Source: Macrostomum lignano
Lineage: Eukaryota
Direction of reading: 5' to 3'
NCBI GenBank assembly: GCA_002269645.1
Contig: NIVC01000032.1
Coordinates: 62,001-126,000 of the forward strand
Length of the DNA: 64,000 nt
The translations under genes were made by a program, and so were the position numbers. Positions 3,695 through 62,649 of the stretch are shown here, piece by piece; position 1 is the first letter of the stretch; each line of letters starts with the position of its first letter. Under the pieces are notes generated by a model that saw only the letters and a program-made list of their open reading frames with translations, ran no database searches and was not told where the DNA came from.

Positions 3695-5398
3695 ATGAGC
3701 CGCAAAAGCTCCAGCGACAGCTCGAGTTCGGACGCGCCTCCCGCTTCCCCAACTCCTCTCTGCATCATCTGCGACCAAGCTGCAGTCGGTGTGGCTCCGT
3801 TCTCCCGCTGCCACATGTGCAGTCAACACCTCAGTGTCGATGTGGCCAATCTATTCAAGCTCAAGGAGGAGGTCGAAGAGCTGCTGCGTGCCTACTCACA
3901 AGAGTCACAAGAGTCACAAGAGTCACAAGAGTCACAAGAGTCACAAGAGTCACAAGAGTCACAAGACTCACAAGAGTCACAAGACGCAGCAGGTGCAGCT
4001 GGCCGTGCAGCTCAGCTGCGACCAAGACAAGACGCTGAGTCGCTGCGTCGTCTCGCTCTCGACATCCAACAGCAGCTGCAAGAGGTCAATCACAAATTCG
4101 ATTTGGTACAGCAACACATCGACTCGTTTCGTAGCAGGGTGACGGGCCCGCTCTCAGGTGTGCTTGAGGCAGTGCGTGTGTGCGAGCGGGACCTCGAGGA
4201 CGTCTCCAGCTACAAGCAGGAGGTGGCCACGGCGGAGGCTGCAGGCGACATGGCGGAGCTGCTTCGCCTGGTGCAGTCCATGCACGAATCGCTTGGAGAC
4301 TTGGAGGCCGACTTTGAGAGGTCAGAGCGCCTGCTCAGAGACCAGAGCGACAATGAGGAGCTGCAGCTGCGGCTTCTGGGCCAGCTCGAGCGGCTGGTCG
4401 GCATTTGTGCGGGACGCAGTGAAGAGGGCGACTGGTCGAGAGACGCTGCGGTGACCGCGACATCCGAGGAGATAGACGCTGCTGAGAGAGAGAGAATGTT
4501 AGAGCCGATGGTCTTCAGTCACGAGGTGAAGCTGAATGGTCCTGTTACATGGCTGGCTGTGTGCAGCGACACCAGCGGATTCGTTGGTGACCGCTCAGGC
4601 CGTGTGGTTCGCATCGACTCAGCGGGAGACGGCAGCGAGGCTCTGCCTCAGCCCTACATCCTGGCATCATACTTTTCCGACAGAGACCACCTACTGGTGC
4701 TGTCTGTGGATGGCTCAAAGAAGCTGCGGTGCCACTGCGACATCGACTGGAAGATTTTCATCCGTGGCCTTCACTGCGACCGTCAGCTGCTGTTCATTGC
4801 TCAGCGTGACGCAGTGACAGTGACGGACCTAAGCGGTCGCGCGGTGCGTCGAGTCCGCCCACGCAACGAGGGCTTCGGTGACATCAGGGGAATCGGCGGC
4901 AACGCAGCCTCCGTGTTTGTGTCCAGTGGAAACAAAATTGCTGCATTCAGCAAAGCGACTTGGCAGATGGAGACGGTCATTACGCTGTCTCAGCTTCCTC
5001 ATGCTGATCTGCTTAACATGGTGACTCACAACAACTGCATTCTGGTGACGGACTGGGAGCACAAGCAGGTGCACAGAGTGCGCATCGACACCCAGCAGCT
5101 GGTCGCCTCCTTCCCGACTCAGCGTTCCGGCCTCCAACAGTTTTCTCTTCCATATGATGTGGCCGTCGACAGCAGAGGCCGCCTGTTCGTGAGTGAATGG
5201 TTGGGTCACTCAGTGCGTGCTGTGGCTGCAGACGACGGGTCGCTGCTGTGGACTCTGGGGACTCCGGGCGAGAGCGGCAGCGGAGACGACAGATTCAGGC
5301 ATCCATGCTGTCTGGCGGTGGTGACTGGAGGTCCGCGCGAGCAGCTGGTGGTGGCTGACTTGTACAACATGAGACTGCAGGTGTTCAGTGCACCCTAA
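3695..5398 (+). CDS. RING-less TRIM-NHL-like protein, copy 1 (intact): Cys/His motif, (SQE)n, coiled coil, NHL propeller
   Basis: The ATG lines up with the starts of copies 2, 4, 5 and 6. C-x2-C-x12-C-x2-C-x2-H motif, a long helical region rich in L/E/R/Q, and NHL signatures PYDVAVDSRGRLFVSE and FRHPCCLAV...VADLYNMRLQVF. Stop TAA at 5396-5398. Confidence 0.88.
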   Translation: MSRKSSSDSSSSDAPPASPTPLCIICDQAAVGVAPFSRCHMCSQHLSVDVANLFKLKEEVEELLRAYSQESQESQESQESQESQESQESQDSQESQDAAGAAGRAAQLRPRQDAESLRRLALDIQQQLQEVNHKFDLVQQHIDSFRSRVTGPLSGVLEAVRVCERDLEDVSSYKQEVATAEAAGDMAELLRLVQSMHESLGDLEADFERSERLLRDQSDNEELQLRLLGQLERLVGICAGRSEEGDWSRDAAVTATSEEIDAAERERMLEPMVFSHEVKLNGPVTWLAVCSDTSGFVGDRSGRVVRIDSAGDGSEALPQPYILASYFSDRDHLLVLSVDGSKKLRCHCDIDWKIFIRGLHCDRQLLFIAQRDAVTVTDLSGRAVRRVRPRNEGFGDIRGIGGNAASVFVSSGNKIAAFSKATWQMETVITLSQLPHADLLNMVTHNNCILVTDWEHKQVHRVRIDTQQLVASFPTQRSGLQQFSLPYDVAVDSRGRLFVSEWLGHSVRAVAADDGSLLWTLGTPGESGSGDDRFRHPCCLAVVTGGPREQLVVADLYNMRLQVFSAP

Positions 5399-6648
5399 TT
5401 GTATTCACTGGGTGAATAATACTCGAACTGTGGGGTTTCTAATTTAATTTCAGCAAAGCTCCAAAAACCCAATTTTGTGCCTGTGAATCATTTTTGGAAA
5501 TCCCAATCACCCTGTGCTCAGTGAAACTCCAGCTTTTGACACTCAAACTGCTCATTCATTTTTATCAGTCGCTCGCTTTTGCAGTTTTCTTCAAACCGCC
5601 CCCTTAGCTTGCACTCAGACTTTATTGATACAATTATGCAAAGCAACTTTGATGCTTTATCATTTTTTCTTGGATATTAATGCAGCCTCTACGCGTCATC
5701 TTTTCTGTGTCAGAACTGATGTCAAATCTGATGTGATTTCTCTTTTAACTGCCTCACCCGAATTCATAATGCTATCCAGCTGAGTGCATTGCCAGCCAAT
5801 GAAACTGCTCAAAAAAGCAGAAGCTGAAGATGCGATCCCAGTCTCACCTAATAGGAAGTAGGAAGCAGCAAGGTGCAGTGGAAATCTCAAATGCGAAAGA
5901 CTGAAAAATTCTGTAAAACCGCAGGTTAAACCAGTCGGGAATCTCCGCCCTCCCTCCCTCGCACGTGCACTAGACTTTCTCCGACCTGAGCAGACAGTCT
6001 CAGCCGAACTACTCAGAGTGAGCAGATTAACCCAGCTGATCCTAGCAAAGCACTCCCTCTCCTCCACACACCGGATCGAACCGCTGGTTCGCTCTGACAG
6101 CAGAACCTCAGAGCGAGCACAAAATATTCGGAAACTCCTGACTTGGTGTGGCTGACCTTGCACTGTACTCTCTGCTGTAAGCCAGCATCACTGATTGACA
6201 CCATCAAATACATCTGCATCATCAGGAAAATTCAGTTAAATTGTCGGCTCAGTTACTTTGGCTCCGCCACTTGGAGTAGAAGTCACAGACAGCCACTGTA
6301 GTGAGAGTCACTGACTTGAGAGACTTGAGAGCCAAGATATTGAAATATTTCCCTCGCTGCAGACTCAGCGCTCGCTTTTGAGTTCCAATTTCCTCAATGG
6401 GTCACTGCTTTGTGTTCTATATGCATGGGCACTGGTGCTTTTAGCAGGGAAACTATTGTTAAAATATGAGTGCTTTGTAAAGTAGAAATTGATGGCACAA
6501 CACAACTGAATGTTACATAACAAAACAATTCTCATGTACGTTAGTTGGTCATCCCATCCGTTAAATTTTATTTTAAAGCAGCGAAATCCCAGAATGTCTT
6601 GGGTTCAAAGTCTCACAGGTTTTTTGGTACCACGTGACACCTGCTAGA

Positions 6649-6821
6649 GACTGGGTTTCATTGTGACTGGTAATCATGGTGGGTTTCACTGTGACTGGGT
6701 TTCACTGTGACTGGGTTTCACTGTGACTGGGTTTCACTGTGACTGGGTTTCACTGTGACTGGGTTTCACTGTGACTGCAGGCTTTCACTGTGACTGGCTT
6801 TCACAGTGACTGGGTTTCACA
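6649..6821. repeat. 16-bp minisatellite (GTGACTGGGTTTCAC[T/A])n
   Basis: About 10 units. Homologous arrays occur at 26330-26876 and 34549-34744. Confidence 0.9.
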
Positions 6822-13401: not shown

Positions 13402-13848
13402 CTCATCACAGACTATCCAACAATGAGCCGCAGAAGCTCCAGCGACAGCTCGAGTTCGGACGCGCCTCCCGCTTCCCCAACTCCTCTCTGCATCATCTGC
13501 GACCAAGCTGCAGTCCGTGTGGCTCCGTTCTCCCGCTGCCACATGTGCAGTCAACACCTCAGTGTCGATGTGGCCAATCTATTTGAGGCAGCGCTGGATT
13601 CTACCGCTGTACTTATGACTAAGTGACTAGCTGATTGACTATTGAAATATTGACTGTACATCCAGTGTACCCACCACCCCGATTTCGTACCCCGTGCGCC
13701 CCGCCACCCCAATGCGTTAATAATTATATATTGAGCTTCGTTTGTGTTAGCATCGTTTATGATTAATATATCGAGACTGAGACATCGTTTATTTATAATA
13801 CCAAATCATCGTGTTGCTCAGTTGAAGTCTTAATTAAACGACGCGACA

Positions 13849-16800
13849 ATGGCGTCGCAAGCAGAAAGGCAGAGTCATGAACTCAATTTGGACGACGCCG
13901 ACATGGCCGAAGCATGGATGCAGCGACTCTCAGCCACAGCGCGCATCAAAAAGCTAACAGACTCGGATGAGGCTCGGGACAAAACTGACCTATTCTTATC
14001 TAAGGCCGGCCTTCAGGCAATTCGCACGCTATCCCTAATGGCAGCACCAAAAAAACTTGATGAGATGAAATTCGATGACATCAAAAAGCTAGTTGACGAG
14101 ACGATCCGGCCGAAAAAGTCACTTGTAATTGCCGAACGCACCAGGTTCCTCAGCTTGAAGCAGGAATCGAGTGAGACCGTCATAGCCTACTACCGGAGGC
14201 TGAGGGCTGCTACGTCACACTGCGAGTTTGAAAAGCTGGGCAGCAAGCAGACAAAGGAGGACGACATGATTACCATGCGACTAATTGACGGCCTCAACTC
14301 CTCAGAGCACAAAAAAAGAATCTTGGAGCGCCTACAAAACGAAGATGGAGAAACGCCACTCGACAGGATTTTGCAGAATTTGCAGCAGCTTGAGCAGATC
14401 CGTGACTACAACACGCCGGCTCCTGCTGACATCGCCTTCGCCGGTCAACAGAGGGGAGTCTCCTCACCTGCCAAGCCGCAGCCGTCAATCAAATGCGGGT
14501 TCTGCGGCGCCAATCACCTGAGGGGCAACTGCCCAGCCTACGGCAAAAAATGCTCCAAGTGCCAAAAAAGAAATCACTTTGCGGCTGTCTGCAGATCACG
14601 AGCTGTCCATCAGGAAATCGCAGTCGATGCAGAAGAAGCAGACGTGTATACTCTTAGCCCCAACAGAGCTAAAGCGGGCCTCTTCAAGACCATCAAAATC
14701 AACGGCCAGGGTATCTCAATGCAAGTCGACACTGGAACTGAGATCAGTCTGATTCCGCAGAACCTCTGGCGCCAGCTGGGCCGGCCCAACCTGCGCAAGT
14801 GCAGGAGAATTCTCCGGCAGTTCGACGGCTCCAGCATCGCCTGCCTCGGGGAATTCACTGCGTCACTCGAGACCAACTCGAAATTCGTCACGATTGACCT
14901 GGTTGTCACCGCCGCGGAGAAGAAGCACGGTCTGCTTGGCATGGACAACATAAAGCTCCAAGAAGACGCGGTCACCATCAACGCGGTCCAACAGCTCGGA
15001 TGCCTCAAAGGGTTCAAAGCTAAGATTAGACTGGTGGAAGGAGCCAAAGCGTTCTATTGTGCTGCCCGGTCCGTGCCGCTACACCTCAGAGACTTGGTGG
15101 TGCGCGAGCTGCAAAGAATGGAATCCGAGGGTATCATTGAGGCGGTCCCTCCCGGAGGCAGCCAGTGGGCATCGCCTATTGTCAACGTGCTCAAGCCAAA
15201 TGGAAAGGTTCGTGTCTGTGCCGATTTTAAAGCTGGTGTCAATCACCAGATATGCAATGACACCTACCCGATCCCGGAGATGGAGACGATTTTTTCTGAG
15301 ATAGCAGGCATGTCGCACTTTTCTAAACTGGATCTCTCTGATGCTTACCTGCAAATCGAACTCGATGAAGATAGCCGAGAGGTGACGACAATCGCGACAC
15401 CTTTGGGTCTCTTCCGCTACAAAAGGCTGGTTCCCGGGCTGAAATCTGCATCGGCCATTTTCCAGAAAGCCATGGAAACAATCCTACAGGATGTCAGCAA
15501 CAAGATTGTCTACCAGGATGACGTCCTCCTGGGAGCGAAGTCCAACGCCGAATTAAGGAGCAAAGTGCAGCACGTTCTCCAGACGATGCGAACTGCTGGA
15601 ATGACGATCAACCTAGAAAAGTCTAATCTAAGCGCAACGGAGGTCAGATTCCTCGGCTACAGCATCAGCGCGAGCGGGATCACCCCGGACCCCAATCTGG
15701 TCGGAAAAATTCGCTCAGTGAACTCGCCGAAGGACAGAAAGCAGCTCGAATCGTTTCTAGGACTTTCCAACTTCTTCGGGAGGTTTATTAAGAATTACTC
15801 TGACGTCATAGAACCGCTCAATCAACTCCGGGGCCGAAACGTTGAGTTCGTCTGGGGCCCAGCCCAGGAAGCTGCCTTCACGCGAATCAAGGATCTGCTG
15901 TGCAGCGAGCCTGTAATCAAGCCGTATGACAAGCACAAAGAGACCACGCTCACTACCGATGCTAGCGAGAAAGCCATCGGAGCGATCCTCTCGCAGGGCA
16001 ACCACCCGATCATGTACTTCAGCCGGAAACTGAGCAGTGCAGAAGCAGGGTATTCAAACATCGAGAGAGAGGCGCTGGCGATCGTTTGGGCTATGGAGCG
16101 TGCGAAACAGTTTCTATTAGGGTCGCGCTTCACACTCAGAACGGATCATCGCCCGCTGGAATTCATCTTCGGGTCGAGGCGCCAGCTGCCGAAGGTTGCC
16201 AATGCGAGACTTCTCCGATGGGCAATCGAACTGATGGCCTTTGACTATGACATCGTCTACACTAAAGGCGAATCGATTCCGCAAGTAGATGCACTTTCGC
16301 GGCTGGATTTTGAAGGTGACAGCGACACCGAGCTGACAGAGCGGCCGGAAAGCATCATTCACTGGACTGGCGAGGCTGTGATCCCGTGGCAGGAGCTGAA
16401 ATCAGAGACCCAAAGGGACCGACTGCTGCTTGATGTCATGAAACGCGTTGCTGTCAACAGATGGTCAAACTGCTCGCCAGCCGAACGACCTTTCAAGGCC
16501 ATCCGACACGCCCTCACGACCGACGACGGAGTTCTCTGCTACGGTGATCGCCCAGTCATCCCGGCTGTCCTCCTACAAGGCGTTCTTGGAATTGTGCACG
16601 ATACGCATCAGGGATCTGGCTCAACGCGCGCTCGCCTACAGAACTCAGCCTGGTGGCCCGGCTATTGCAGCGACGTCGAGGCCTACGTTCGAGGTTGCCC
16701 GACCTGCTCAAGACTGCGCCCGAGTGGTCTGGAGAGTGTCCACAGGTGGCCCGACGAGGAAAAGCCGTGGCACAGGGTCCACATGGATCATGCGTGTGTG

Positions 16801-17373
16801 CCGAGGGTCGGACTCCTGCTCATTCTAGTTGACGCTATGTCCGGCTGGCCCGAGGCTGTACGAGTGCAAAACAGGGACGCGGCGACAGTCAAGCGGGTGT
16901 TGCAGACAATCTTTGCTAGGAACGGCGTGCCTCATGTGCTGGTCAGCGACAACGCCGCCGAGTTCCACGACGCCAATCTGATTGCCTGGCTGGAAAGAAT
17001 CGGCTGCCGCGCCATCAAGACTCCCCCGCGACACCCTCAGTCTAACGGCTTGGCCGAGCGGATGGTCCAGTCTATCAAGAGAGCATCTGCGGCGTGGGAC
17101 CAGTCCGAAAGCTACGAGTCGTTCCTGTCCAGGGTACTCCTAAACTACAGGTGTGTGCCGCATGCTGGGCGCCAGCAGAGCCCGTCACAGCTCATGGGTC
17201 GACAACTACGCAACCCGATAACCATGCGCACACCAATCGGAGCGAGCCTGTGGTACACGCCTGGTGATCAGCAGCGTCAGGAGCGAGCTGAGTTCGTCGT
17301 GCAGAAGGGAACCAACACCGCCCTAATCGCTCGTCAAGGCGGTCGCATCGCCCTGGCGCAACGGATCAGCTGA
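13849..17373 (+). CDS. Gag-Pol polyprotein (Gag with double CCHC, protease, RT, RNase H, integrase)
   Basis: CGFCGANH...CPAYGKKCSKCQKRNHFAAVC; VDTG; YQDD; TTDAS; HQG..CPTC; VHMD..SDN..SNGLAER. The domain order is Gypsy. A probable 1-nt loss near 17360 truncates the integrase tail. Confidence 0.95.
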   Translation: MASQAERQSHELNLDDADMAEAWMQRLSATARIKKLTDSDEARDKTDLFLSKAGLQAIRTLSLMAAPKKLDEMKFDDIKKLVDETIRPKKSLVIAERTRFLSLKQESSETVIAYYRRLRAATSHCEFEKLGSKQTKEDDMITMRLIDGLNSSEHKKRILERLQNEDGETPLDRILQNLQQLEQIRDYNTPAPADIAFAGQQRGVSSPAKPQPSIKCGFCGANHLRGNCPAYGKKCSKCQKRNHFAAVCRSRAVHQEIAVDAEEADVYTLSPNRAKAGLFKTIKINGQGISMQVDTGTEISLIPQNLWRQLGRPNLRKCRRILRQFDGSSIACLGEFTASLETNSKFVTIDLVVTAAEKKHGLLGMDNIKLQEDAVTINAVQQLGCLKGFKAKIRLVEGAKAFYCAARSVPLHLRDLVVRELQRMESEGIIEAVPPGGSQWASPIVNVLKPNGKVRVCADFKAGVNHQICNDTYPIPEMETIFSEIAGMSHFSKLDLSDAYLQIELDEDSREVTTIATPLGLFRYKRLVPGLKSASAIFQKAMETILQDVSNKIVYQDDVLLGAKSNAELRSKVQHVLQTMRTAGMTINLEKSNLSATEVRFLGYSISASGITPDPNLVGKIRSVNSPKDRKQLESFLGLSNFFGRFIKNYSDVIEPLNQLRGRNVEFVWGPAQEAAFTRIKDLLCSEPVIKPYDKHKETTLTTDASEKAIGAILSQGNHPIMYFSRKLSSAEAGYSNIEREALAIVWAMERAKQFLLGSRFTLRTDHRPLEFIFGSRRQLPKVANARLLRWAIELMAFDYDIVYTKGESIPQVDALSRLDFEGDSDTELTERPESIIHWTGEAVIPWQELKSETQRDRLLLDVMKRVAVNRWSNCSPAERPFKAIRHALTTDDGVLCYGDRPVIPAVLLQGVLGIVHDTHQGSGSTRARLQNSAWWPGYCSDVEAYVRGCPTCSRLRPSGLESVHRWPDEEKPWHRVHMDHACVPRVGLLLILVDAMSGWPEAVRVQNRDAATVKRVLQTIFARNGVPHVLVSDNAAEFHDANLIAWLERIGCRAIKTPPRHPQSNGLAERMVQSIKRASAAWDQSESYESFLSRVLLNYRCVPHAGRQQSPSQLMGRQLRNPITMRTPIGASLWYTPGDQQRQERAEFVVQKGTNTALIARQGGRIALAQRIS

Positions 17374-17429
17374 GACGCGTTGTAGAAGACCAGGTACAGC
17401 CAAACCGATTCGGCCGGAGCCTACCTATC

Positions 17430-17645
17430 GAACTCGGTCAGGACCCGCCTGGCGAACTCGGTCAGGACCCGCCTGGCGAACTCGGTCAGGACCCGCCTGG
17501 CGAACTCGGTCAGGACCCGCCTGGCGAACTCGGTCAGGACCCGCCTGGCGAACTCGGTCAGGACCCGCCTGGCGAACTCGGTCAGGACCCGCCTGGCGAA
17601 CTCGGTCAGGACCCGCCTGGCGAACTCAGTCGGGACCCGCCCACC
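17430..17645 (+). repeat. 24-bp minisatellite inside the LTR element, reading (ELGQDPPG)n in the integrase-tail frame
   Basis: Eight full GAACTCGGTCAGGACCCGCCTGGC units plus one divergent unit. Confidence 0.93.
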
Positions 17646-19947
17646 GAATCCGAACAAGGCCCAAGTCAAACAGCAGTACGTCGCTACCCAGCTCGGTCAA
17701 CTCGAGGCGTGCCCCCTATCCGTTTCGAAGGGGGGAGATGAGGCAGCGCTGGATTCTACCGCTGTACTTATGACTAAGTGACTAGCTGATTGACTATTGA
17801 AATATTGACTGTACATCCAGTGTACCCACCACCCCGATTTCGTACCCCGTGCGCCCCGCCACCCCAATGCGTTAATAATTATATATTGAGCTTCGTTTGT
17901 GTTAGCATCGTTTATGATTAATATATCGAGACTGAGACATCGTTTATTTATAATACCAAATCATCGTGTTGCTCAGTTGAACTCTTAATTAAACGACGCG
18001 ACACTATTCAAGCTCAAGAAGGAGGTCGAAGAGCTGCTGCGTGCCTACTCACAAGACTCACAAGAGTCACAAGAGTCACAAGAGTCACAAGAGTCACAAG
18101 AGTCACAAGAGTCACAAAAGCCACAAGAGTCACAAGAGTCACAAGAGTCACAAGACTCACAAGAATCACAAAAGCCACAACAGTCTCAAGGCGCAGCAGG
18201 TTCAGCTGGCCGTGCAGGGCTGCTGCGACACCGACAAGACGCTGAGTCGCTGCGTCGTCTCGCTATCGACATCCAACAGCAGCTGCAAGAGGTCAATCAC
18301 AAATTCGATTTGGTACAGCAACACATCGACTCGTTTCGTAGCAGGGTGACGGGCCAGCTCTCAGGTGTGCTTGAGGCAGTGCGTGTGTGCGAGCGGGACC
18401 TCGAGGACGTCTCCAGCTACAAGCAGGAGGTGGCCACGGCGGAAGCTGCAGGCGACATGGCGGAGCTGCTTCGCCTGGTCCAGTCCATGCACGAATCGCT
18501 TGGAGACTTGGAGGCCGACTTTGAGAGGTCAGAGCGCCTGCTCAGAGACAAGAGCGACAATGAGGAGCTGCAGCTGCGGCTTCTGGGCCAGCTCGAGCGG
18601 CTGGTCGGCATTTGTGCGGGACGCAGTGAAGAGGGCGACTGGTCGAGAGACACTACGGTGACCGCGACATCCGAGGAGATAGACGCTGCTGAGAGAGAGA
18701 ATGTTAGAGCCGATGGTCTTCAGTCACGAGGTGAAGCTGGATGACGATGCTGCATGGCTGGCTGTGTGCAGCGACACTAGCGGATTCGTTGGTGACCACT
18801 CAGGCCGTGTGGTTCCTGCCGACTCAGCGGGAATTTTTAAAAAACCTCTGCCTCAGCCCTGCATATTTGCATCATTCTTAAGCTTCGCGAGCAAGGACCA
18901 CCTACTGGTGCTGTCTGTGGACGGCTCACAGAAGTTGCGGTGCCACTGCGACATCGACTGGAAGATTTTCATCTGTGGCCTTCACTGCGACCGTCAGCTG
19001 CTGTTTATTGCTCAGCGTGACGCAGTGACAGTGACGGACCTGAGCGGTCGCGTGGTGCGTCGAGTCCGCCCACACATCGAGGGCTTGGTGTCCATCTGTG
19101 GAATCGGCGGCAACGCAGCCTCTGTGTTTGTGTCCAGTGGAAACAAAATTGCTGCACTCAGCAAAACGACTTGGCAGATGGAGACGGTCATCACGCTGTC
19201 TCAGCTTCCTCATGCTCGACTGGGTAACCTGGCGACTCACGACAACTGCATCCTGGTGAGAGACTGGAAGCACAATCAGGTGCACAGAGTGAGCATCGAC
19301 ACCCAGCAGCTGGTCGCCTCCTTCCCGACTCAGCGTTCCGGCCTCCAACAGTTTTCTCTTCCATATGATGTGGCCGTCGACAGCAGAGGCCGCCTGTTCG
19401 TGAGTGAAAATTGGGGTCACTCAGTGCGAGCGGTGGCTGCAGACGACGGGTCGCTGCTGTGGACTCTGGGGACTCCGGGCGAAAGCGGCAGCGGAGACGG
19501 CAGATTCGACAGGCCATTGAGTCTGGCGGTGGTGACGGGAGGTCCGCGCGAGCAGCTGGTGGTGGCTGACTGTTTTAATAACAGACTGCAGGTGTTCAGT
19601 GCATTATAATTTTATTCACAGGCCGAATAATATTCGAACTGTGTGGGTTTCTGAAATGATTGATTTATTGGGGGTCGGGTTTTCGGTCGAGCTTTTCTTG
19701 TGATACAATTTTTTAAATATGATTAGCTTCTTTGCCTGATAATTGTTTTTTATGTCCAGTATTCTCAATTGATATTTATTGAATAGATGCACATTAGACA
19801 TTATGCTTTTATTAAGTAATTAAATTTAACTTTTGTTGGCTCTCACACCAAAAACTGGGACTTGACTGTTGAATTGAATTTCAGCAAAAATGGCATGCAG
19901 TTTGCTTAAATTGTCCCCACTCGCTGCAGACTCTCACTCAGGTGTGG

Positions 19948-20091: not shown

Positions 20092-20096
20092 CTCAA

Positions 20097-20156
20097 GATG
20101 GCAGATTCAACAGGCCATGGGGTCTGGCGGTGGTGACTGGAGGTCCGCGCGAGCAG
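20097..20156 (+). pseudogene. Orphan 60-nt fragment of the last NHL repeat (DGRFNRPWGLAVVTGGPREQ)
   Basis: GATGGCAGATTCAACAGGCCATGGGGTCTGGCGGTGGTGACTGGAGGTCCGCGCGAGCAG aligns to the 3' end of all six CDSs. Confidence 0.9.
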
Positions 20157-20961
20157 CGAGTTTTTCATATAAATAATTGAACATGATGTGATGACGCGAT
20201 GACCTTCTTTGCCAGTATATTCTGAACTGATTCTGAACTGTTGCATTTTCCTCAGTGGGTCACTGCTGTGTTGTATATGCATGGGCACAGGTGTTTATAG
20301 ATGGGAAATTTGACTGCAGCGGTAGGCATTCTGATTGTCTGCCTCCAACAGCGAGATCTGCTAGCAGCCGGGCGAGGACAACGCGATGGGCCGATGGACT
20401 GAGTCGGATCTGGAGTCCATGAGTGACAAAGTGACTGCTTGAGTCTGAGCTGAGCAGACTTTGACTGCAGTTAGTGGAACAGGGTTTTTCTTTGCAGGTT
20501 GCTGGCTTCTTTTACGTGTAGCTCGTATTTGCTGTTTCTGCTGTCTTTGGTTTCCTTGCTTCCGTTTTGTGGTGGGGTGTGAGGCTTGGTTTATGTTTCT
20601 CGCGATCACCCTGGGCGGCTTGTCTCGCACAATTAATAGACGGACGCGAATACAACTTTTACTGTGCTGTTTATTCTGAAAAGAAACCTCTTAGGCTGAG
20701 CTCTTACTGAAGAATACTTTGAGTGCTGGCTTCTTTCTTGCTTTCGTCTTAAGGGGGAATGTCAGTGTTTCACGGAGATCTGGGCAGCTAAGTTATGATA
20801 GGTATATTAGCACATACGTGTAAGCAAGATGTTGTGGCTGGAGGTCAAGAGTGAGTCGAACGCGGGTCAGGTTAGGAGAAATTGATTAGAATCAGCCACC
20901 TGCGTGACACGCGAACAACGGGCGGCCCTGACCTGACTTTGACCAGCGTCGTTAAGCCAGC

Positions 20962-31335: not shown

Positions 31336-31348
31336 ATCGGCACTCAAG

Positions 31349-41295: not shown

Positions 41296-42924
41296 ATGAG
41301 CCTTGAAGACTACAGCGACAGCTCGAGTTCGGACGCGCCTCCCGCTTCCCCAACTCCTCTCTGCATCATCTGCGACCAAGCTGCAGTCGGTGAGGCTCCG
41401 TTCTCCCGCTGCCTCATGTGCAGTCAACACCTCAGTGTCGATGTGGCCAATCTATTCAAGCTCAAGGAGGAGGTCGAAGAGCTGCTGCGTCCCTACTCAG
41501 AAGAGTCACGAGACGCAGCAAGTGCAGCTGGCCGTGCAGCGCTGCTGCGACCAAGACAAGACGCTGAGTCGCTGCGTCGTCTCGCTCTCGACATCCAACA
41601 GCAGCTGCAAGAGGTCAATCAAAAATTCGATTTGGTACAGCAACACATCGACTCGTTTCGTAGCAGGGTGACGGGCCAGCTCTCAGGTGTGCTTGAGGCA
41701 GTGCGTGTGTGCGAGCGGGACCTCGAGGACGTCTCCAGCTACAAGCGGGAGGTGGCCACGGCGGAGGCTGCAGGCGACATGGCGGAGCTGCTTCGCCTGG
41801 TGCAGTCCATGCACGAATCGCTTGGAGACTTGGAGGCCGACTTTGAGAGGTCAGAGCGCCTGCTCAGAGACCAGAGCAACAATGAGGAGCTGCAGCTGCG
41901 GCTTCTGGGCCAGCTCGAGCGGCTGGTCGGCATTTGTGCGGGACGGAGTGAAGAGGGCGACTGGTCGAGAGACGCTGCTGTGACCGCGACATCCGAGGAG
42001 ATAGACGCTGCTGAGAAAGAGAGACTGCTGTTCGATCCGATGGTCTTCAATCACAAGGTGAAGCTGGATGGCAATTCTCAATGGCTGGCTGTGTGCAGCG
42101 ACACCAGCGGATTCGTTGGTGACCGCTCAGGCCGTGTGGTTCCCGCCGACTCAGCGAGAGACGGCAGCGAGGCTTTGCCTCAGCCCTGCATTATTGCAGC
42201 ATTCTGTAAAAATAGAGACCATCTACTGGTGCTTTCTGTGGACGGCTCACAGAAGCTGCGGTGCCACTGCGACATCGACTGGAAGAAGAGCATTCATGGC
42301 CTTCACTGCGACCGTCAGCTGCTGTTCATTGCTCAGTCTAACGCAGTGACAGTGACAGAACTGAGCGGTCGCGCGGTTCGTCGAGTCCACATCGTGGGCT
42401 TCGGTGACATCTGTGGAATCGGCGGCAACGCAGCCTCCGTGTTTGTGTCCAGTGGAAACAAAATTGCTGCATTCAGCAAAGCGACTTGGCAGATGGAGAC
42501 GGTCATCACGCTGTCTCAGCTTCCTCATGCTGCACTGGGTAACCTGACAACTCACGACAACTGCATTCTGGTGACGGACTGGATGCACAATCAGGTGCAC
42601 AGAGTGCGCATCGACACCCAGCAGCTGGTCGCCTCCTTCCCGACTCAGCGATCCGGCCTCCAAGAGTTTGCTTATCCAAAGGATGTGGCCGTCGACAGCA
42701 GAGGCCGCCTGTTCGTGAGTGAATTTTTGGGTTACTCAGTGCGAGCAGTGGCTGCAGACGAGGGGTCGCTGCTGTGGACTCTGGGGACTCCGGGCGAGAG
42801 CGGCAGCGGAGACGACAGATTCAGGGGTCCATGGGGTCTGGCGGTGGTGACGGGAGGTCCGCGCGACCAGCTGGTGGTGGCTGACTGTGGGAACAGGAGA
42901 CTGCAGGTGTTCAGTGCATCCTAG
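41296..42924 (+). CDS. TRIM-NHL-like protein, copy 4 (intact, no SQ repeat)
   Basis: 542-aa open frame MSLEDYSDSSSS...RLQVFSAS* with the Cys motif, coiled coil and NHL signatures. Confidence 0.9.
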   Translation: MSLEDYSDSSSSDAPPASPTPLCIICDQAAVGEAPFSRCLMCSQHLSVDVANLFKLKEEVEELLRPYSEESRDAASAAGRAALLRPRQDAESLRRLALDIQQQLQEVNQKFDLVQQHIDSFRSRVTGQLSGVLEAVRVCERDLEDVSSYKREVATAEAAGDMAELLRLVQSMHESLGDLEADFERSERLLRDQSNNEELQLRLLGQLERLVGICAGRSEEGDWSRDAAVTATSEEIDAAEKERLLFDPMVFNHKVKLDGNSQWLAVCSDTSGFVGDRSGRVVPADSARDGSEALPQPCIIAAFCKNRDHLLVLSVDGSQKLRCHCDIDWKKSIHGLHCDRQLLFIAQSNAVTVTELSGRAVRRVHIVGFGDICGIGGNAASVFVSSGNKIAAFSKATWQMETVITLSQLPHAALGNLTTHDNCILVTDWMHNQVHRVRIDTQQLVASFPTQRSGLQEFAYPKDVAVDSRGRLFVSEFLGYSVRAVAADEGSLLWTLGTPGESGSGDDRFRGPWGLAVVTGGPRDQLVVADCGNRRLQVFSAS

Positions 42925-54127: not shown

Positions 54128-55837
54128 ATGAGCCTTGAAGACACCAGTGACAGCTCGAGTTCGGACACGCCTCCCGCTACCCCAACTCCTCTCTGCATCA
54201 TCTGCGACCAAGCTGCAGTCGGTGTGGCTCCGTTCTCCCGCTGCCACATGTGCAGTCAACACCTCAGTGTCGATGTGGCCAATCTATTCAAGCTCAAGGA
54301 GGAGGTCGAAGAGCTGCTGCGTGCCTACTCAAAAGACTCACAAGAGTCACAAGACTCACAAGAGTCACAAGACTCACAAGAGTCACAAGACTCACAAGAG
54401 TCACAAGACTCACAAGAGTCACAAGGCGCAGCAGTTTCAGCTGGCCGTGCAGCGCTGCTGCGACCAAGACAAGACGCTGAGTCGCTGCGTCGTCTCGCTC
54501 TCGACATCCAACAGCAGCTGCAAGAGGTCAATCACAAATTCGATTTGGTACAGCAACACATCGACTCGTTTCGTAGCAGGGTGACGGGCCAGCTCTCAGG
54601 TGTGCTTGAGGCAGTGCGTGTGTGCGAGCGGGACCTCGAGGACGTCTCCAGCTACAAGCAGGAGGTGGCCACGGCGGAGGCTGCAGGCGACATTGCGGAG
54701 CTGCTTCGCCTGGTGCAGTCCATGCACGAATCGCTTGGAGACTTGGAGGCCGACTTTGAGAGGTCAGAGCGCCTGCTCAGAGACCAGAGCGACAATGAGG
54801 AGCTGCAGGTGCGGCTTCTGGGCCAGCTCGAGCGGCTGGTCGGCATTTGTGCGGGACGGAGTGAAGAGGGCGACTGGTCGAGAGACGCTGCGGTGACCGC
54901 GACGTCCGAGGAGATTGACGCTGCTGAGAGACTTCTGTTCGATCCGATGGTCTTCAGTCACGAGGTGAAGCTGGATGGCGATGTTAAATGGCTGGCTGTG
55001 TGCAGCGACACCAGCGGATTCGTTGGTGACCGCTCAGGCCGAGTGGTTCCCGCCGACTCAGCGGGAGACGGCAGCGAGGCTCTGCCTCAACCCTGCATCC
55101 TGGTATCATACTTTTCCGATAGAGACCATCTACTGGTGCTGTCTGTGGACGGCTCACAAAAGCTGCGGTGCCACTGCGACATCGACTGGAATAAGGACAT
55201 TTTTGGCCTTCACTGCGACGGTCAGCTACTGTTCATTGCTCAGCCTGACGCAGTGACAGTGACGGACCTGAGCGGTCGCGCGGTTCGTCGACTCAGCCCA
55301 CAAATTCGGGGTTTCTGTGGTATCTTGGGAATCGGTGGCAACGCAGCCACCGTGTTTGTGCCCAGCGGAAACAAAATTGTTGCATTCAGCAAAGCGACTT
55401 GGCAGATGGAGACGGTCATCACGCTGTCTCAACTTCCTGATGCACGACTGCACAACCTGGCGACTCACGACAACTGCATTCTGGTGACGGACTGGATGCA
55501 CAATCAGGTGCACAGAGTGCGCATCGACACCCAGCAGCTGGTCGCCTCCTTCCCGACTCAGCGTTCCAGCCTCCAACAGTCTGCTCATCCAATTGATGTT
55601 GCCGTCGACAGCAGAGGCCGCCTGTTCGTGAGTGAATTTTCGGGTCACTCAGTGAGATCGGTGGCTGCAGACGACGGGTCGCTGCTGTGGACTCTGGGGA
55701 CTCCGGGCGAGAGCGGCAGCGGAGACGGCAGATTCAGGGGTCCATGGGGTCTGGCGGTGGTGACGGGAGGTCCGCGCGACCAGCTGGTGGTGGCTGACAG
55801 TTTTAATAGCAGACTGCAGGTGTTCAGTGCATCGTAA
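54128..55837 (+). CDS. TRIM-NHL-like protein, copy 5 (intact)
   Basis: 569-aa open frame MSLEDTSDSSSS...RLQVFSAS*. Confidence 0.9.
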   Translation: MSLEDTSDSSSSDTPPATPTPLCIICDQAAVGVAPFSRCHMCSQHLSVDVANLFKLKEEVEELLRAYSKDSQESQDSQESQDSQESQDSQESQDSQESQGAAVSAGRAALLRPRQDAESLRRLALDIQQQLQEVNHKFDLVQQHIDSFRSRVTGQLSGVLEAVRVCERDLEDVSSYKQEVATAEAAGDIAELLRLVQSMHESLGDLEADFERSERLLRDQSDNEELQVRLLGQLERLVGICAGRSEEGDWSRDAAVTATSEEIDAAERLLFDPMVFSHEVKLDGDVKWLAVCSDTSGFVGDRSGRVVPADSAGDGSEALPQPCILVSYFSDRDHLLVLSVDGSQKLRCHCDIDWNKDIFGLHCDGQLLFIAQPDAVTVTDLSGRAVRRLSPQIRGFCGILGIGGNAATVFVPSGNKIVAFSKATWQMETVITLSQLPDARLHNLATHDNCILVTDWMHNQVHRVRIDTQQLVASFPTQRSSLQQSAHPIDVAVDSRGRLFVSEFSGHSVRSVAADDGSLLWTLGTPGESGSGDGRFRGPWGLAVVTGGPRDQLVVADSFNSRLQVFSAS

Positions 55838-60672: not shown

Positions 60673-60969
60673 TGCAATAGTTCAGACTCTGCTAAAAGAA
60701 GCGATCTTCCAGTCTAAGCCAAGAAGTAAACGAATTCGCTCTGCATTCAGCAAGTGCACAGCTGCATCAAATAACGCAGTTGCTTTGCGCCCTCTGAAGC
60801 AGGCAGATGCGAACTCTGGACCGTGAACAGTCACCTGCCCTCTGCCAATGTAAACTGTGCGTCCCCACCCATGCTGCAGCTGCCGCTCGTCTACTTAAAA
60901 GGCAGCCTTGTGCGAATCAACAGTTGTCGTTTTACAACGAAATAAAATTGAAGGACCTGCGGTGCTGCA

Positions 60970-62649
60970 ATGAGCATTGAAGATTCCAGCGACAGCTCGA
61001 GTTCGGACGCGCCTCCCGCTACCCCAACTCCTCTTTGCATCATCTGCGACCAAGCTGCAGTCGGTGTGGCTCCGTTCTCCCGCTGCCGCATGTGCAGTCA
61101 ACACCTCAGTGTCGATGTGGCCAATCTATTCAAGCTCAAGGAGGAGGTCGAAGAGCTGCTGCGTGCCTACTCAAAAGACTCACAAGACTCACAAGACTCA
61201 CAAGGTGCAGCAGGTGCAGCCAGCCGTGCAGCGCTGATGCGACCAAGACAAGACGCTGAGTCGCTGCGTCGTCTCGCTCTCGACATCCAACAGCAGCTGC
61301 AAGAGGTCAATCACAAATTCGATTTGGTACAGCAACACATCGACTCGTTTCGTAGCAGGGTGACGGGCCAGCTCTCAGGTGTGCTTGAGGCAGTGCGTGT
61401 GTGCGAGCGGGACCTCGAGGACGTCTCCAGCTACAAGTAGGAGGTGGCCACGTCGGAGACTGCAGGCGACATGGCGGAGCTGCTTCGCCTGGTCCAGTCC
61501 ATGCACGAATCGCTTGGAGACTTGGAGGCCGACTTTGAGAGGTCAGAGCGCCTGCTCAGAGAACAGAGGGACAATGAGGAGCTGCAGCTGCGGCTTCTGG
61601 GCCAGCTCGAGCGGCTGGTTGGCATTTGTGCGGGACGCAGTGAAGAGGGCGACTGGTCGAGAGACGCTGCGGTGACCGCGAGGCCGGATTTGAGAGACGC
61701 TGCGGTGACTGCGACATCTGAGGAGATAGACGCTGCTGAGAGAGAGAATGTTGGAGCCGATGGTCTTTAGTCACGAGGTGGATCTGGATGCCCCTGTTCA
61801 ATGGCTGGCTGTGTGCAGCGACACCAGCGGATTCGTTGGTGACCGCTCAGGCCGAGTGGTTCCCGCCGACTCAGCGAGAGGCGGCAGCGAGACTCTGCCT
61901 CAGCCCTGCATCCTGGCATCATTTCATCGCAATAGTAACAAAGACCACCTACTGATGCTGTCTGTGGACGGCTCACAGAAGCTGCGATGCCACTGCGACA
62001 TCGACTGGAATAAGAATATTCCAGGCCTTCACTGCGACCGTCAGCTGCTGTTCATTGCTCAGCATGACGTAGTGACAGCGACGGACTTGAGCGGTCGCAA
62101 GGTGCATCGAATTTACCGCCCACACATCGAGGGCTTCGGTGACATCAGTGGAATCGGTGGCAACGCAGCCTCCGTGTTTGTGTCCAGTGAAAACAAAATT
62201 GCTGCATTCAGCAAAGCGACTTGGCAGATGGAGACGGTCATCACGCTGTCTCAGCTTCCTTTTGCTTATTTAAACAACCTGGCGACTCACGACAACTGCA
62301 TTCTGGTGATAGCAGGGAGCGCGATAAGGTGCACAGAGTGCGCATCGACACCCAGCAGCTGGTCGCCTCCTTCCCGACTCAGCGTTCCGGCCTCCAACAG
62401 TTTGCCTTTTCAGAGGATGTGGCCGTCGACAGCAGAGGCCGCCTGTTCGTGAGTGAAAATGGTGGTCACTCAGTGCGAGCGGTGGCTGCAGACGACGGTT
62501 CGCTGCTGTGGACTCTGGGCGGGAGAGTCAGCAGAGACGGCAGATTTTGGCATCCATGGGGTCTGGCGGTGGTGACGGGATGTCCGCGCGAGCAGCTGCT
62601 GGTGGCTGACTGTTACAACAACAGACTACAGGTGTTCAGTGCATCCTAA
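60970..62649 (+). pseudogene. TRIM-NHL-like copy 6 (nonsense and frameshift mutations)
   Basis: CAG>TAG at 61438-61440, a 33-bp in-frame duplication near 61660-61715, a (GA)5 frameshift at 61738-61747, a second frameshift near 62310-62330, and a 9-bp deletion near 62520. Confidence 0.92.

Follow-up and report, generated by a model that had tools for sequence, protein, structure and literature searches.

Six tandem genes of the flatworm Macrostomum lignano encode proteins in which very strong diversifying selection acts on ~10% of the codons of a C-terminal beta-propeller. The reading that we consider probable is that of a tandem array homogenised by gene conversion, with diversified loops on the top face of the propeller, making up a germline-encoded repertoire of intracellular receptors.

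Results

Six paralogues in tandem

The window, i.e. the whole 64-kb stretch of DNA that was analysed, contains exactly six paralogues, all on the + strand (tblastn, with copy 5 as the query), and the cluster runs from the ATG of copy 1 to the stop codon of copy 6 (3695-62649). Four of the six are intact (copies 1, 3, 4 and 5), copy 2 is split by an LTR retrotransposon, and copy 6 has a nonsense codon and frameshifts. The features are:

3441..3666, + strand: 18-bp tandem repeat, directly upstream of the copy 1 ATG
3695..5398, + strand: copy 1, intact, intronless, 567 aa, propeller from 4505 (ORF, tblastn, Pfam NHL match, alignment)
13423..13583, + strand: 5' fragment of copy 2, codons 1-54, cut by the LTR retrotransposon insertion
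13584..18003, + strand: LTR retrotransposon in copy 2 (LTRs, target duplication, gag-pol ORF)
18009..19609, + strand: remainder of copy 2 (tblastn, ORF, alignment)
20097..20162, + strand: isolated family relic of 66 bp (tblastn)
31349..33043, + strand: copy 3, intact, 564 aa, propeller from 32141 (ORF, tblastn, alignment)
32775..33037, + strand: 263-bp tract of copy 3, matching 55569-55831 of copy 5 at every base
41296..42924, + strand: copy 4, intact, 542 aa, SQE repeat shorter than in any other copy, propeller from 42037
54128..55837, + strand: copy 5, intact, 569 aa, the reference for residue numbering
60970..62649, + strand: copy 6, pseudogene (ORF, tblastn, alignment)

The product of copy 1 consists of a Cys motif, an acidic (SQE)n repeat, ~190 aa of helices and an NHL-type propeller. 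The 18-bp repeat upstream of it is in frame and gives the program-called ORF a spurious (PDLSLP)n N-terminal extension; the same repeat is also found upstream of copy 3 (31080-31314). In copy 5, the candidate zinc-site residues are C23, C26, C42 and H45, the helices span residues ~50-242 and the propeller residues 273-569 (54944-55834). The retrotransposon insertion in copy 2 is very recent: the LTRs, 265 bp each, are 100% identical. The element has TG...CA ends, the target duplication is 5 bp long (CTATT), and the gag-pol ORF at 13849-17373 (1174 aa) is intact. In the remainder of copy 2, the (GA)n linker has lost 2 nt, which shifts the frame; the propeller ORF (18701-19609) is still open. 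The gene model P0008 of the ML2 assembly reproduces copy 1 as well as the junction between copy 2 and the LTR, running from the 5' fragment of copy 2 into the LTR. In copy 6, a CAG>TAG change at 61438-61440 creates a nonsense codon, 2 nt are missing from the (GA)n linker, and the propeller has deletions of 1 nt and 9 nt. The 66-bp relic, which encodes DGRFNRPWGLAVVTGGPREQ, corresponding to the final d-a loop together with strand a, is the sole fragment of the family in the window besides the six genes. Recently active retroelements are abundant at the locus and across the M. lignano genome.

The wider family

The top database matches of the copies are M. lignano proteins with 80-85% identity. 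The search of the genome for additional members found them on NIVC01000200.1 and NIVC01001900.1, for a total of at least 20 copies in at least 3 clusters; several of those in other clusters are pseudogenes, as are two of the six in the window, and thirteen full-length ORFs are still open across the family. Remoter relatives that share this architecture all come from M. lignano, apart from environmental transcripts, and the multigene family is intronless and Macrostomum-specific. The GenBank paralogues of Mlig_3_7 are annotated from RNA-seq-derived transcript models, which points to expression of paralogues, the signal of any individual window copy being confounded by multi-mapping. The gene identifiers were absent from the two supplementary data sets searched, including the text files of a paper re-analysing germline and neoblast data, and our literature search found no earlier description of this gene family.

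Hypervariable patches and diversifying selection

The original prediction had described a paralogue cluster with a constant N-terminus and variable patches in the propeller, and both parts of this observation were confirmed in the six genes. The N-terminal half, comprising the Cys motif and coiled coil that were said to be nearly identical, has pS 0.029 and pN 0.028 between copies, and every string of the six patch sets quoted occurs verbatim in the translations. These are, for copies 1 to 6:

after VKL/VDL: NGPVT, DDDAA, DGLVH, DGNSQ, DGDVK, DAPVQ
after DIDW: KIFIR, KIFIC, NKDIF, KKSIH, NKDIF, NKNIP
before VAVDS: FSLPYD, FSLPYD, SAHPID, FAYPKD, SAHPID, FAFSED
after SE: WL, NW, FS, FL, FS, NG
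after RF: RHPCC, DRPLS, RGPWG, RGPWG, RGPWG, WHPWG
after VAD: LYNM, CFNN, SFNS, CGNR, SFNS, CYNN

All six are real, but the list was incomplete, as there are about 12 variable patches. Propeller columns with at least three residue types (n = 43) are clustered far more than chance would give (mean nearest-neighbour distance 2.09 vs 3.85 ± 0.43 in 10,000 permutations), and the codons of these columns have pN 0.48, with pS 0.10 at the invariant propeller codons.

In our home-made implementation of the codon site models, with branch-length proportions fixed from M0, the gain of M2a over M1a was 2ΔlnL = 136 with all six window copies, 79 when only the four intact ones were used, and 483 with 16 family members, for which M7 vs M8 gave 521 and M8a vs M8 gave 472. 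M0 gave ω = 1.0, and ω over the whole domain was ~1; the positive class had ω2 ~9-11, comprising ~9.5% of codons at ω ≈ 9 in the 16-member set, where M2a placed ~57% of codons at ω = 0.13. Recombination violates the single-tree assumption of these models, and was handled by segmenting and by null simulation: the four segments, each on its own tree, gave 2ΔlnL = 91-114 apiece, and simulations under the null on a recombinant mosaic of four trees gave 1.7-17.8, the real signal being >25-fold above. The dN/dS above 1 anticipated for the patches is thus found, and it survives both controls. With naive empirical Bayes site probabilities, 22 codons had a posterior > 0.95 (M2a), all of them in the propeller (54944..55834, + strand, in copy 5), and per-segment trees recovered 21 of them:

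selected codons 1-11 (copy 5): D285, K287, G313, F329, S330, K356, D357, F359, P373, L400, D438
selected codons 12-22 (copy 5): R440, H442, M457, H487, I489, F504, S505, R537, S558, F559, S561

At these sites, Tyr (14x), Trp, Cys, Lys, Asn, Arg and His are over-represented. The pS of invariant codons (0.05-0.105) shows no steady gradient toward the selected sites, except at 11 adjacent codons with pS 0.168.

The face predicted to vary

When faces were assigned from predicted secondary structure and strand-parity topology, 18 of the 22 selected sites lay in loops of top parity (d-a/b-c) and three at the start of the next strand (Fisher p ~1e-6 to 1e-7), while the opposite face, with its a-b and c-d loops, was nearly invariant. 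On this assignment, the selected residues are not dispersed and do not fall within strands, and they would be almost entirely in d-a/b-c loops, i.e. on the top face; G313, F329 and S330, in two divergent N-terminal blade units, are ambiguous and may belong to the other face. Known TRIM-NHL propellers have their binding site on the top surface (PMC9634614; PMC5908797), and propellers of other kinds also take up ligands there. The earlier interpretation of a diversified recognition surface on a constant scaffold is supported by this arrangement.

Protein architecture

The propeller matches the Pfam NHL profile (33 bits vs a cut-off of 20), and in a PDB profile search it matches Thin (5.5e-23), TRIM71 (6e-22) and TRIM2/3 (1e-13 to 1e-15). 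Its AlphaFold model (pLDDT ~88-90, pTM 0.88) has TRIM-NHL propellers as top Foldseek matches (TMt 0.76-0.80, rmsd 3.3-3.8 Å). The NHL sequence profile fits the last two blades only, there are ~35-40 extra residues, and the blades within one protein are unlike each other; seven a-b-c sequence units are recognisable, and the blade count may be six with an insertion, or seven. Long helices come immediately after the Cys/His motif, then ~30 residues and the propeller, with no filamin domain, and the acidic (SQE)n repeat varies in length among copies. The N-terminal helices have low AlphaFold confidence (pLDDT < 50), and it is for this reason that a coiled-coil or dimer role is one that we infer.

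The proteins had been called RING-less TRIM-NHL. This holds for the RING, which is absent, and for the NHL-type propeller; as to TRIM membership, no B-box was detected with Pfam or the PDB profile search, and the only site conserved superfamily-wide is C-x2-4-C-x14-C-x2-H (CCCH). TRIM is only a resemblance here and not a demonstrated membership. Neither a signal peptide or signal-like N-terminus nor a hydrophobic or membrane segment is present in the protein sequences, and the proteins are predicted to be soluble and intracellular.

Gene conversion among the copies

Recombination between the copies is evident from PHI (0.509 vs 0.594 ± 0.017, p < 0.001; 50% of informative site pairs incompatible) and from patch variants that are shared among copies in mosaic fashion. 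The 263-bp tract common to copies 3 and 5, which includes the 3'-end patches RF-RGPWG and AD-SFNS, is a recent gene conversion or crossover; upstream of it the two propellers are only 74-90% identical. The tree is ~5x shorter for the N-terminal region than for the propeller (0.56 vs 3.0), with an N-terminal ω of 0.92, and homology between copies begins at the ATG, the upstream regions falling into four unrelated classes. The constancy of the scaffold is owed largely to gene conversion, more than to purifying selection, and with the scaffold homogenised in this manner the regime is one of birth-and-death plus concerted evolution. Birth-and-death alone, as first proposed, fits the copies lost to insertion, nonsense mutation and frameshift but is incomplete, since PHI and the 263-bp tract indicate concerted evolution as well.

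Discussion

Likeness to known systems

With the TRIM-NHL proteins (Drosophila Thin/TRIM32, Brat, NCL-1, TRIM71/LIN-41, TRIM2/3), the family shares the C-terminal NHL propeller, as seen in the top profile and Foldseek matches, and RING-less members such as Brat and NCL-1 exist among them. The order of Cys/His motif, long helices and propeller without a filamin domain is likewise a shared trait, and the end right after an RLQVF-type strand, with an N-terminal strand positioned to close the last blade, recalls LIN-41 (PMC5908797). The flatworm proteins differ in having neither a RING nor a recognisable B-box but one CCCH site, and in a propeller with extra residues that matches the NHL profile in its last two blades only and deviates from TRIM-NHL structures by more than human TRIM NHLs do from each other (0.75-1.33 Å; PMC9634614). 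Moreover, the canonical TRIM-NHLs belong to the 'group 1' genes, which are old, small in number and slow to evolve (PMC2533329), whereas the flatworm genes form a hypervariable, intronless multicopy family restricted to one lineage.

In the B30.2/SPRY TRIMs, as here, a constant zinc-motif/coiled-coil scaffold carries a C-terminal recognition domain with positively selected surface loops. Primate TRIM5alpha/TRIM22 and teleost finTRIM are antiviral, with B30.2 loops under positive selection, a role that is putative in the flatworm, where an NHL propeller takes the place of B30.2 as recognition module and there is no RING E3 domain. These 'group 2' TRIMs likewise form species-specific tandem clusters and are intracellular, and they were reported absent from invertebrates (PMC2533329).

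The likeness to the fungal NWD/HNWD NOD-like receptors (het-e/het-d type) lies in a beta-propeller as the variable sensor, in diversifying selection and in gene conversion between paralogues. Their WD40 propeller has a few diversifying positions per blade, reportedly on the top face, and concerted evolution through paralogue gene conversion keeps the remainder near-identical at the nucleotide level. The flatworm proteins, of an animal lineage, have no NACHT/NB-ARC or death-effector domain; their concerted evolution is between paralogous genes and not intragenic repeats, the blades being mutually dissimilar.

Alternative explanations

A role in RNA binding, as regulators or sensors comparable to Brat, LIN-41/TRIM71 or NHL-2, is unlikely for these proteins; each top face would then take a different RNA (e.g. 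transposon or viral transcripts, or different mRNAs), in an arms race with RNA sequences or structures. It is unlikely even though their nearest relatives in sequence and structure are RNA-binding TRIM-NHL propellers that use the same top face, Arg and Lys are ~1.8-2.4x enriched at the selected sites, and locus and genome are rich in recently active retroelements. The net charge is about neutral for the propeller (-6 to +11) and strongly acidic for the whole protein (-10 to -36), and RNA sensing is disfavoured because the propeller surface is non-basic. The selected sites favour Tyr, Trp and Cys most strongly, a composition typical of protein-binding hot spots. Further, some NHL domains do not bind RNA; Wech and Mei-P26 have negative patches on the surface that corresponds to the RNA-binding one (PMC5908797).

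It is rather improbable that the family works in reproduction or sexual conflict, e.g. as cytoplasmic factors of sperm or egg or in gamete competition, with sexual selection and not parasites behind its diversification in this outcrossing hermaphrodite. Reproductive genes do often form lineage-restricted, fast-evolving tandem families such as this one. Germline roles are common among TRIM-NHL proteins, e.g. NHL-2 (PMC6351104), and flatworm-specific reproduction genes exist in M. lignano (PMC5816591). However, without a signal peptide or membrane segment the proteins are neither secreted nor on the surface, their identifiers are missing from the supplementary text files of the germline/neoblast paper, and a repertoire of 20 or more nearly unique specificities, shuffled like cassettes, fits the recognition of many targets better than that of a single partner.

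A non-adaptive origin, by relaxed constraint, local hypermutation or error-prone repair, or recombination artefact in a decaying, recently duplicated family, is very unlikely and already largely refuted. The pseudogenes, the whole-domain ω of ~1, the raised pS of the 11 invariant codons adjoining selected sites, and the pervasive recombination, a known source of inflated site-model tests (17.8 in one null replicate), would all be in its favour. Decay, however, cannot outrun the synonymous rate, as ~10% of codons do at ~9x; the signal is present in every one of the segments as well as in the intact copies taken alone, and far exceeds the mosaic null, the variable sites are restricted to loops of one parity, and thirteen ORFs are open. 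Local hypermutation is disfavoured because, those 11 codons apart, the pS of invariant codons lacks any steady increase toward the selected sites.

Least probable of all is allorecognition, i.e. discrimination of self from non-self between individuals, one of the roles named in the original prediction, the cell-surface form of which is disfavoured because there is no signal peptide or membrane segment in these predicted soluble, intracellular proteins; M. lignano is a solitary animal without known tissue fusion, and the diversity documented is between paralogues. Tandem arrays, gene conversion and the pairing of hypervariable with constant modules do recall the fungal het/NWD loci (PMC13449251), but the sole copy found in two assemblies (copy 1 vs P0008) retains those patches that allow comparison (KIFIR, HADLLNM, WEHK, FSLPYD, WL), the first patch differing (NGPV vs DGLL) just before the apparent frameshift of P0008.

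A probable intracellular receptor repertoire

Gene conversion or recombination between paralogues homogenises the coding sequence, its N-terminal half most, and also reshuffles propeller blocks, while diversifying selection keeps positions of 1-3 residues in the ~12 loop patches different among copies, and copies are lost via transposon insertion, nonsense mutation and microsatellite frameshifts. In the reading that we prefer, that of a germline-encoded receptor repertoire, the helical region would be a constant scaffold for dimerisation or an effector function, and, as there is no RING, any effector step would proceed via oligomerisation, sequestration or a recruited partner. Each paralogue would display a top-face specificity of its own, and hence the family could serve as a repertoire of intracellular receptors against fast-evolving targets, the likeliest being proteins of viruses, transposons or other parasites, by comparison with the B30.2 loops of TRIM5alpha and finTRIM. 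It is by this analogy that we infer an immune-type receptor function: a constant backbone with hypervariable loops, mostly on one face, is what marks receptor families caught up in an arms race.

Gene copies in the window and their decay

A tblastn search with the longest copy as query recovered six paralogues in the window, every one on the plus strand, of which four are intact and encode proteins of 542-569 aa. Long single-exon ORFs interspersed with retroelements and satellites make up the window.

Gene copies (c1-c6) and other elements of the window
c1, 3695-5398, plus strand, intact
c2, 13423-13583 plus 18009-19609, plus strand, broken at codon 54 by an LTR retrotransposon
LTR retrotransposon inside c2, 13584-18003, 265-bp LTRs 100% identical, 5-bp target duplication CTATT
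Last-blade relic of 66 bp (DGRFNRPWGLAVVTGGPREQ), 20097-20162, isolated, ~490 bp downstream of c2
c3, 31349-33043, plus strand, intact
c4, 41296-42924, plus strand, intact
c5, 54128-55837, plus strand, intact
c6, 60970-62649, plus strand, nonsense codon and deletions
38-bp satellite (CATGCTGCATAGCGACTGTGGCATGATTGCCAATCAGA), 7201-9371, 1-168, 35937-36244, 43751-44122 and 46517-46937, up to 57 copies, 97% identity
LINE-like fragment, 37976-40095, plus strand, resembling an endonuclease C-terminus by eye, no Pfam match
Non-LTR element, 44429-46297, plus strand, RT (C-terminal part) and RNase H
Degraded LTR-retrotransposon gag-pol, 49278-53389, minus strand, gag, RT/RNase H and integrase each in an ORF of its own

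Pseudogenisation is ongoing in this family. Besides the LTR insertion, c2 has lost 2 nt from a (GA)n run, and in c6 the same (GA)n loss is accompanied by a CAG>TAG nonsense codon and by deletions of 1 nt and 9 nt. The run, GAGAGAGAGA, stands directly before the propeller (c2 ~18690, c6 ~61740), and the 2-nt deletion is identical in both copies. Frameshifts seem to recur at this (GA)n microsatellite and to inactivate copies. The retrotransposon in c2 has an uninterrupted gag-pol ORF of 1174 aa, with protease, RT, RNase H and integrase matched in Pfam and the gag region N-terminal to them; the insertion looks very recent and the element is possibly still active. The same event has left its trace in the older ML2 gene model P0008, a c1-like gene fused to the N-terminus of c2 and running into the LTR.

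Simple repeats also lie within and beside the genes, in a landscape that is rich in retroelements. An in-frame 9-bp microsatellite, (TCACAAGAG)n, encodes the (SQE)n repeat at the equivalent position in every copy (c2 18049-18190, c5 ~54330-54420). Its copy number runs from ~1 in c4 to ~16 in c2, and the acidic linker that it encodes, which connects the Cys motif to the long helices, differs in length accordingly. An 18-bp tandem repeat lies directly upstream of c1 (3441-3666) and c3 (31080-31314), and since it is in frame with the gene, the mechanical ORFs at 3368-5398 and 31055-33043 gain a false (PDLSLP)n N-terminal extension. The 38-bp satellite recurs between the gene copies and may be either part of the duplicated unit or a substrate for recombination.

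Family size, distribution and transcription

The window copies belong to a multicopy, transcribed, intronless gene family with an NHL-type propeller. Their best database matches are M. lignano hypothetical proteins at 80-85% identity. When the DNA around six annotated paralogues of the Mlig_3_7 assembly was surveyed, at least 15 more copies, several of them frameshifted, were found in other tandem arrays on NIVC01000200.1 and NIVC01001900.1, which answers the proposal in the original prediction to look for more copies in the genome. In the region L002 (NIVC01000200.1 280294-334562), the GenBank model for the family protein P0003 extends over 34 kb, linking the 5' end of one paralogue with the 3' end of a different one, and annotated members around this locus are partly chimeric models across an 8-copy tandem array.

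In an exhaustive profile search, the distant proteins with the full-length architecture were all from M. lignano, in several subfamilies, together with short environmental transcripts. The search is dominated by giant multi-NHL proteins, which match through the two canonical blades only. One of the environmental sequences, a 1.9-kb transcript-like contig (L007; JGI metagenome 3300040775, contig Ga0450778_159907), encodes a relative of the same architecture, which places the family in at least one organism outside the M. lignano entries. Its called gene starts at an internal Met, and the in-frame sequence upstream, CSIRSC...LCQSHL, has the CCCH motif of the family, as C-x4-C-x14-C-x2-H.

Since the Mlig_3_7 GenBank genes come from RNA-seq transcript assemblies (PMC5730564), members of the family are transcribed; multi-mapping keeps transcripts from being assigned to individual copies. 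With no introns at all, the family genes differ from the average M. lignano gene, for which ~4.9 are reported (PMC5730564). We found no literature linking Macrostomum with NHL or TRIM genes or describing this family, and the six Mlig gene identifiers were absent from the literature searched and from the supplementary files of two M. lignano expression studies.

The N-terminal region and the TRIM question

The original prediction had described the cluster as RING-less TRIM-NHL genes. The NHL propeller and the lack of a RING hold, and "RING-less TRIM-NHL-like" is a fair description of how the protein looks, but, with no detectable B-box, the likeness does not establish membership of the TRIM family. 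Pfam searches gave no RING family, either for the window copies (E <= 1) or for 10 members of the superfamily (E <= 0.1). A hidden RING exon was rejected as well, since no RING-bearing candidate ORF was found upstream of c5 and the transcript-derived models P0001-P0006 of annotated paralogues begin at the same Met as the window copies. Likewise, there was no zf-B_box match in Pfam, and the N-terminal profile retrieved no B-box PDB chain at E <= 10; filing the family as TRIM was therefore rejected. A B-box has 7-8 ligands for two zinc ions, and across the subfamilies only C23, C26, C42 and H45 (c5 numbering) are conserved, as C-x2-4-C-x14-C-x2-H in the wider superfamily, so that the ligands suffice for one zinc ion. 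Automatic UniProt names disagree, some members being called "B box-type domain-containing" and others "RING-type domain-containing", and it is thus possible that the Cys motif is a degenerate remnant.

Behind the Cys motif, AlphaFold predicts helices at 50-84, 98-173 and 181-242 with low confidence (pLDDT < 50). Only ~30 residues lie between the helices and the propeller, which leaves the protein without a filamin domain. No signal peptide or membrane segment was found in it.

The propeller fold

At the C-terminal end, Pfam matches NHL repeats only: PF01436 hits one or two stretches, with 33.2 bits in c5, 32.6 in c4 and 25.2 in c1 against a cut-off of 20. A family profile searched against the PDB retrieved the NHL domains of Thin/TRIM32 (5.5e-23), TRIM71 (6e-22), TRIM2/3 and Brat, the last two blades alone contributing to the match. 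In AlphaFold modelling, which included a second model of the propeller alone, residues 273-569 of c5 form an all-beta propeller (pLDDT ~88-90, pTM 0.88). Foldseek, too, places TRIM-NHL propellers first among PDB structures, at TMt 0.76-0.80 and rmsd 3.3-3.8 Å, compared with a TMt of 0.55-0.63 for seven-bladed WD40 proteins.

This comparison favours a six-bladed NHL-like core. However, 25-27 strands are present in the model, and seven a-b-c units can be read in the sequence, with the a strands WLAVCSD, CILVSY, GLHCD, GIGGN, LATHD, DVAVD and LAVVT, so that one of the seven units would be inserted or form a seventh, incomplete blade. In the model, a strand at 276-281 precedes the first blade and the protein ends 2 residues after the strand 562-567 (RLQVFS), as do the chains of Thin and TRIM71; in the NHL topology, the N-terminal strand is the outermost one of the last blade (PMC5908797).

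Diversifying selection in the propeller

The six sets of variable patches listed in the original prediction were all found verbatim in the window copies, but that tally was short, as the propeller has ~12 variable patches. In a nucleotide alignment, the copies have long runs of full identity, synonymous positions included, that are interrupted by short blocks differing at all three codon positions. Columns with at least three residue types are significantly clustered, and each patch exists in 8-16 versions among 16 family members. The near-identity of the Cys motif and coiled coil that had been noted in the same prediction is borne out by pairwise Nei-Gojobori distances, with pS 0.029 and pN 0.028 in the N-terminal half, the values for the propeller being pS 0.128 and pN 0.108. 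Within the propeller, amino-acid-invariant codons have a pS of 0.10 and codons with at least three residue types a pN of 0.48.

Site models were fitted with our own maximum-likelihood implementation of the Goldman-Yang F3x4 model, on a propeller alignment of 16 sequences, i.e. the six window copies and ten from Mlig_3_7. While the overall ω is 1.00 (M0), a class of codons with ω > 1, as had been proposed for the patches, is supported with 2ΔlnL = 483 for M2a over M1a, 521 for M8 over M7 and 472 for M8 over M8a: 9.5% of the codons have ω ~9.1, and 57% have ω = 0.13. With the six window copies alone 2ΔlnL is 136, and with the four intact copies alone it is 79. Because the family recombines, the test was redone with the alignment cut into four segments and a separate tree for each, giving 2ΔlnL of 91-114 and ω2 of 8.6-11 in all four and recovering 21 of the 22 selected sites (codons with an M2a posterior > 0.95). 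Data simulated under the null model on the four-tree mosaic and analyzed with one tree gave a 2ΔlnL of only 1.7-17.8. Recombination as the sole source of the signal was rejected on these two results. Local hypermutation was rejected as the main cause, since the synonymous divergence of invariant codons does not climb steadily towards the selected sites and is raised only in the 11 immediately adjacent codons. Positive selection is extreme at ~22 loop positions.

The N-terminal half, otherwise uniform, has a signal of its own (M2a 2ΔlnL = 63). Codons 3-6 of every copy (c5 54134-54145) are positively selected, the residues after Met-Ser reading LEDT, RKSS, RRSS, LDDS, LKNS, LGHS and so on, and so is the codon aligned with V103 of c5, in a GAAxAAG stretch.

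The face that carries the selected sites

Faces were assigned from the strand order, anchored on the two canonical NHL blades and the published topology, with successive loops alternating between faces. This strand topology puts 18 of the 22 selected sites in loops of d-a/b-c (top) parity, in agreement with the earlier placement of the variable residues on the predicted recognition face; three are at the first residues of the following strand and one is in a bottom loop. The enrichment in top-parity loops is significant (Fisher p ~1e-6 to 1e-7), with hardly any variation in the a-b and c-d loops. The assignment is robust for the five C-terminal units, and G313 and F329/S330, in the two divergent N-terminal units, could lie on the other face. 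TRIM-NHL propellers bind their ligand or RNA at the top opening (PMC9634614; PMC5908797), and from the topology we infer that the selected positions together make up this ligand-binding top face. Among their residues, Tyr (14x), Trp, Cys, Lys, Asn, Arg and His are over-represented.

Gene conversion and the uniform scaffold

The tree of the N-terminal half is ~5x shorter than that of the propeller (length 0.56 vs 3.0) and yet its ω is ~0.92, so purifying selection alone does not explain the uniformity. Gene conversion is pervasive in the family. Recombination was detected by the PHI test (0.509 vs 0.594 ± 0.017, p < 0.001), and half of the informative site pairs are incompatible. A tract of 263 bp is 100% identical between c3 and c5 (32775-33037 = 55569-55831), the propellers being 74-90% identical further upstream. 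Patches are shared in a mosaic manner, patches 4 and 9-12 between c3 and c5 and patches 1-3 between B7 and B8.

In the 5' flanks of the six copies (~1.5 kb each), homology begins at the ATG or at most 3 nt upstream of it. An origin of the intronless copies by retroposition might be read from this start, against which two pairs also have upstream sequence in common, and the copies share 40-450 bp of 3' flank. The upstream regions fall into four unrelated classes, c1 with c3 (850 bp, 86%), c4 with c6 (390 bp, 76%), and c2 and c5 each on its own, so the copies may have different promoters in spite of a homogenised coding sequence.

A bank of donor cassettes in the style of VLR or chicken Ig genes was rejected for this window, since a short-word blastn search with all copies finds only the one 66-bp relic outside the genes. 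On a different contig, a comparable last-blade relic follows downstream of a paralogue (L006 12261-12326). The evolutionary regime is one of gene conversion (concerted evolution) combined with diversifying selection and gene death. Of the birth-and-death evolution proposed originally, gene death stands, but plain birth-and-death does not suffice, as the PHI result, the 263-bp tract and the mosaic patches point to gene conversion.

Possible function and relation to known systems

A small number of ancient, conserved TRIM-NHL regulators, such as Brat, LIN-41/TRIM71 and TRIM2/3/32, are the known bearers of NHL propellers. The TRIM-NHL proteins are the nearest relatives of the family by sequence and fold, and they count among the conserved "group 1" TRIMs, few in number and of ancient origin; clustered, fast and species-specific TRIM evolution has been described for the vertebrate B30.2/SPRY "group 2", reported to be absent from invertebrates (PMC2533329). 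The flatworm family resembles TRIM5alpha and the finTRIMs of that kind in having clustered, species-specific paralogues with the surface loops of the recognition domain under positive selection, but there the variable loops are held by a C-terminal B30.2/PRY-SPRY domain, whereas here they belong to an NHL propeller, with no SPRY match in Pfam. With the fungal NWD/HNWD WD40 sensors it has in common the combination of concerted evolution and diversifying selection at few propeller positions. In the flatworm family, however, exchange is between genes and not between the repeats of one gene, and there is no Pfam match for the NACHT/NB-ARC domain that lies upstream of the repeats in those NLRs.

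We tentatively propose that macrostomid flatworms may have independently built an intracellular immune-receptor repertoire on the NHL beta-propeller, in which at least 20 germline genes would combine a scaffold kept uniform by conversion with ~12 top-face loop "cassettes" that are shuffled between paralogues and pushed apart by selection against fast-evolving viral or transposon ligands. By analogy with known systems, the family would provide, encoded in the germline, a set of intracellular receptors directed at fast-evolving ligands, for which viral, transposon or other parasite proteins are the most plausible candidates, and the helical region would serve as a dimerisation or effector scaffold. 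Recognition of RNA, which some TRIM-NHL propellers bind at the same opening, seems unlikely, as the propeller has a net charge near zero and the protein as a whole is strongly acidic, unlike the basic RNA-binding face of LIN-41 (PMC5908797). Reproductive conflict as the force behind the diversified loops is an improbable explanation. That the pattern is a non-adaptive artefact is more doubtful still, given that the signal persists in each segment and that the mosaic null falls so far below it, and we give hardly any credence to allorecognition, one of the roles first suggested for the variable face.

If the immune-receptor reading is true, the family would stand as the invertebrate equivalent to TRIM5/finTRIM and to the fungal and plant NLR sensors. 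It would also be the first instance of hypervariable recognition by an NHL domain, which otherwise occurs in developmental regulators that evolve slowly. The family shows that the NHL propeller can also be used as a hypervariable recognition surface in an invertebrate, with a selection signal (ω ~9 at ~10% of codons) among the strongest obtainable. It is a natural experiment in which gene conversion and diversifying selection jointly yield a constant scaffold with a variable paratope, and the map of ~22 putatively specificity-determining top-face positions could guide engineering and ligand discovery for NHL domains generally. Transgenesis and RNAi exist for M. lignano. The family is relevant to invertebrate immunity, gene-family evolution and NHL domains, as a candidate family of innate-immunity or genome-defence receptors in a genetically tractable flatworm.
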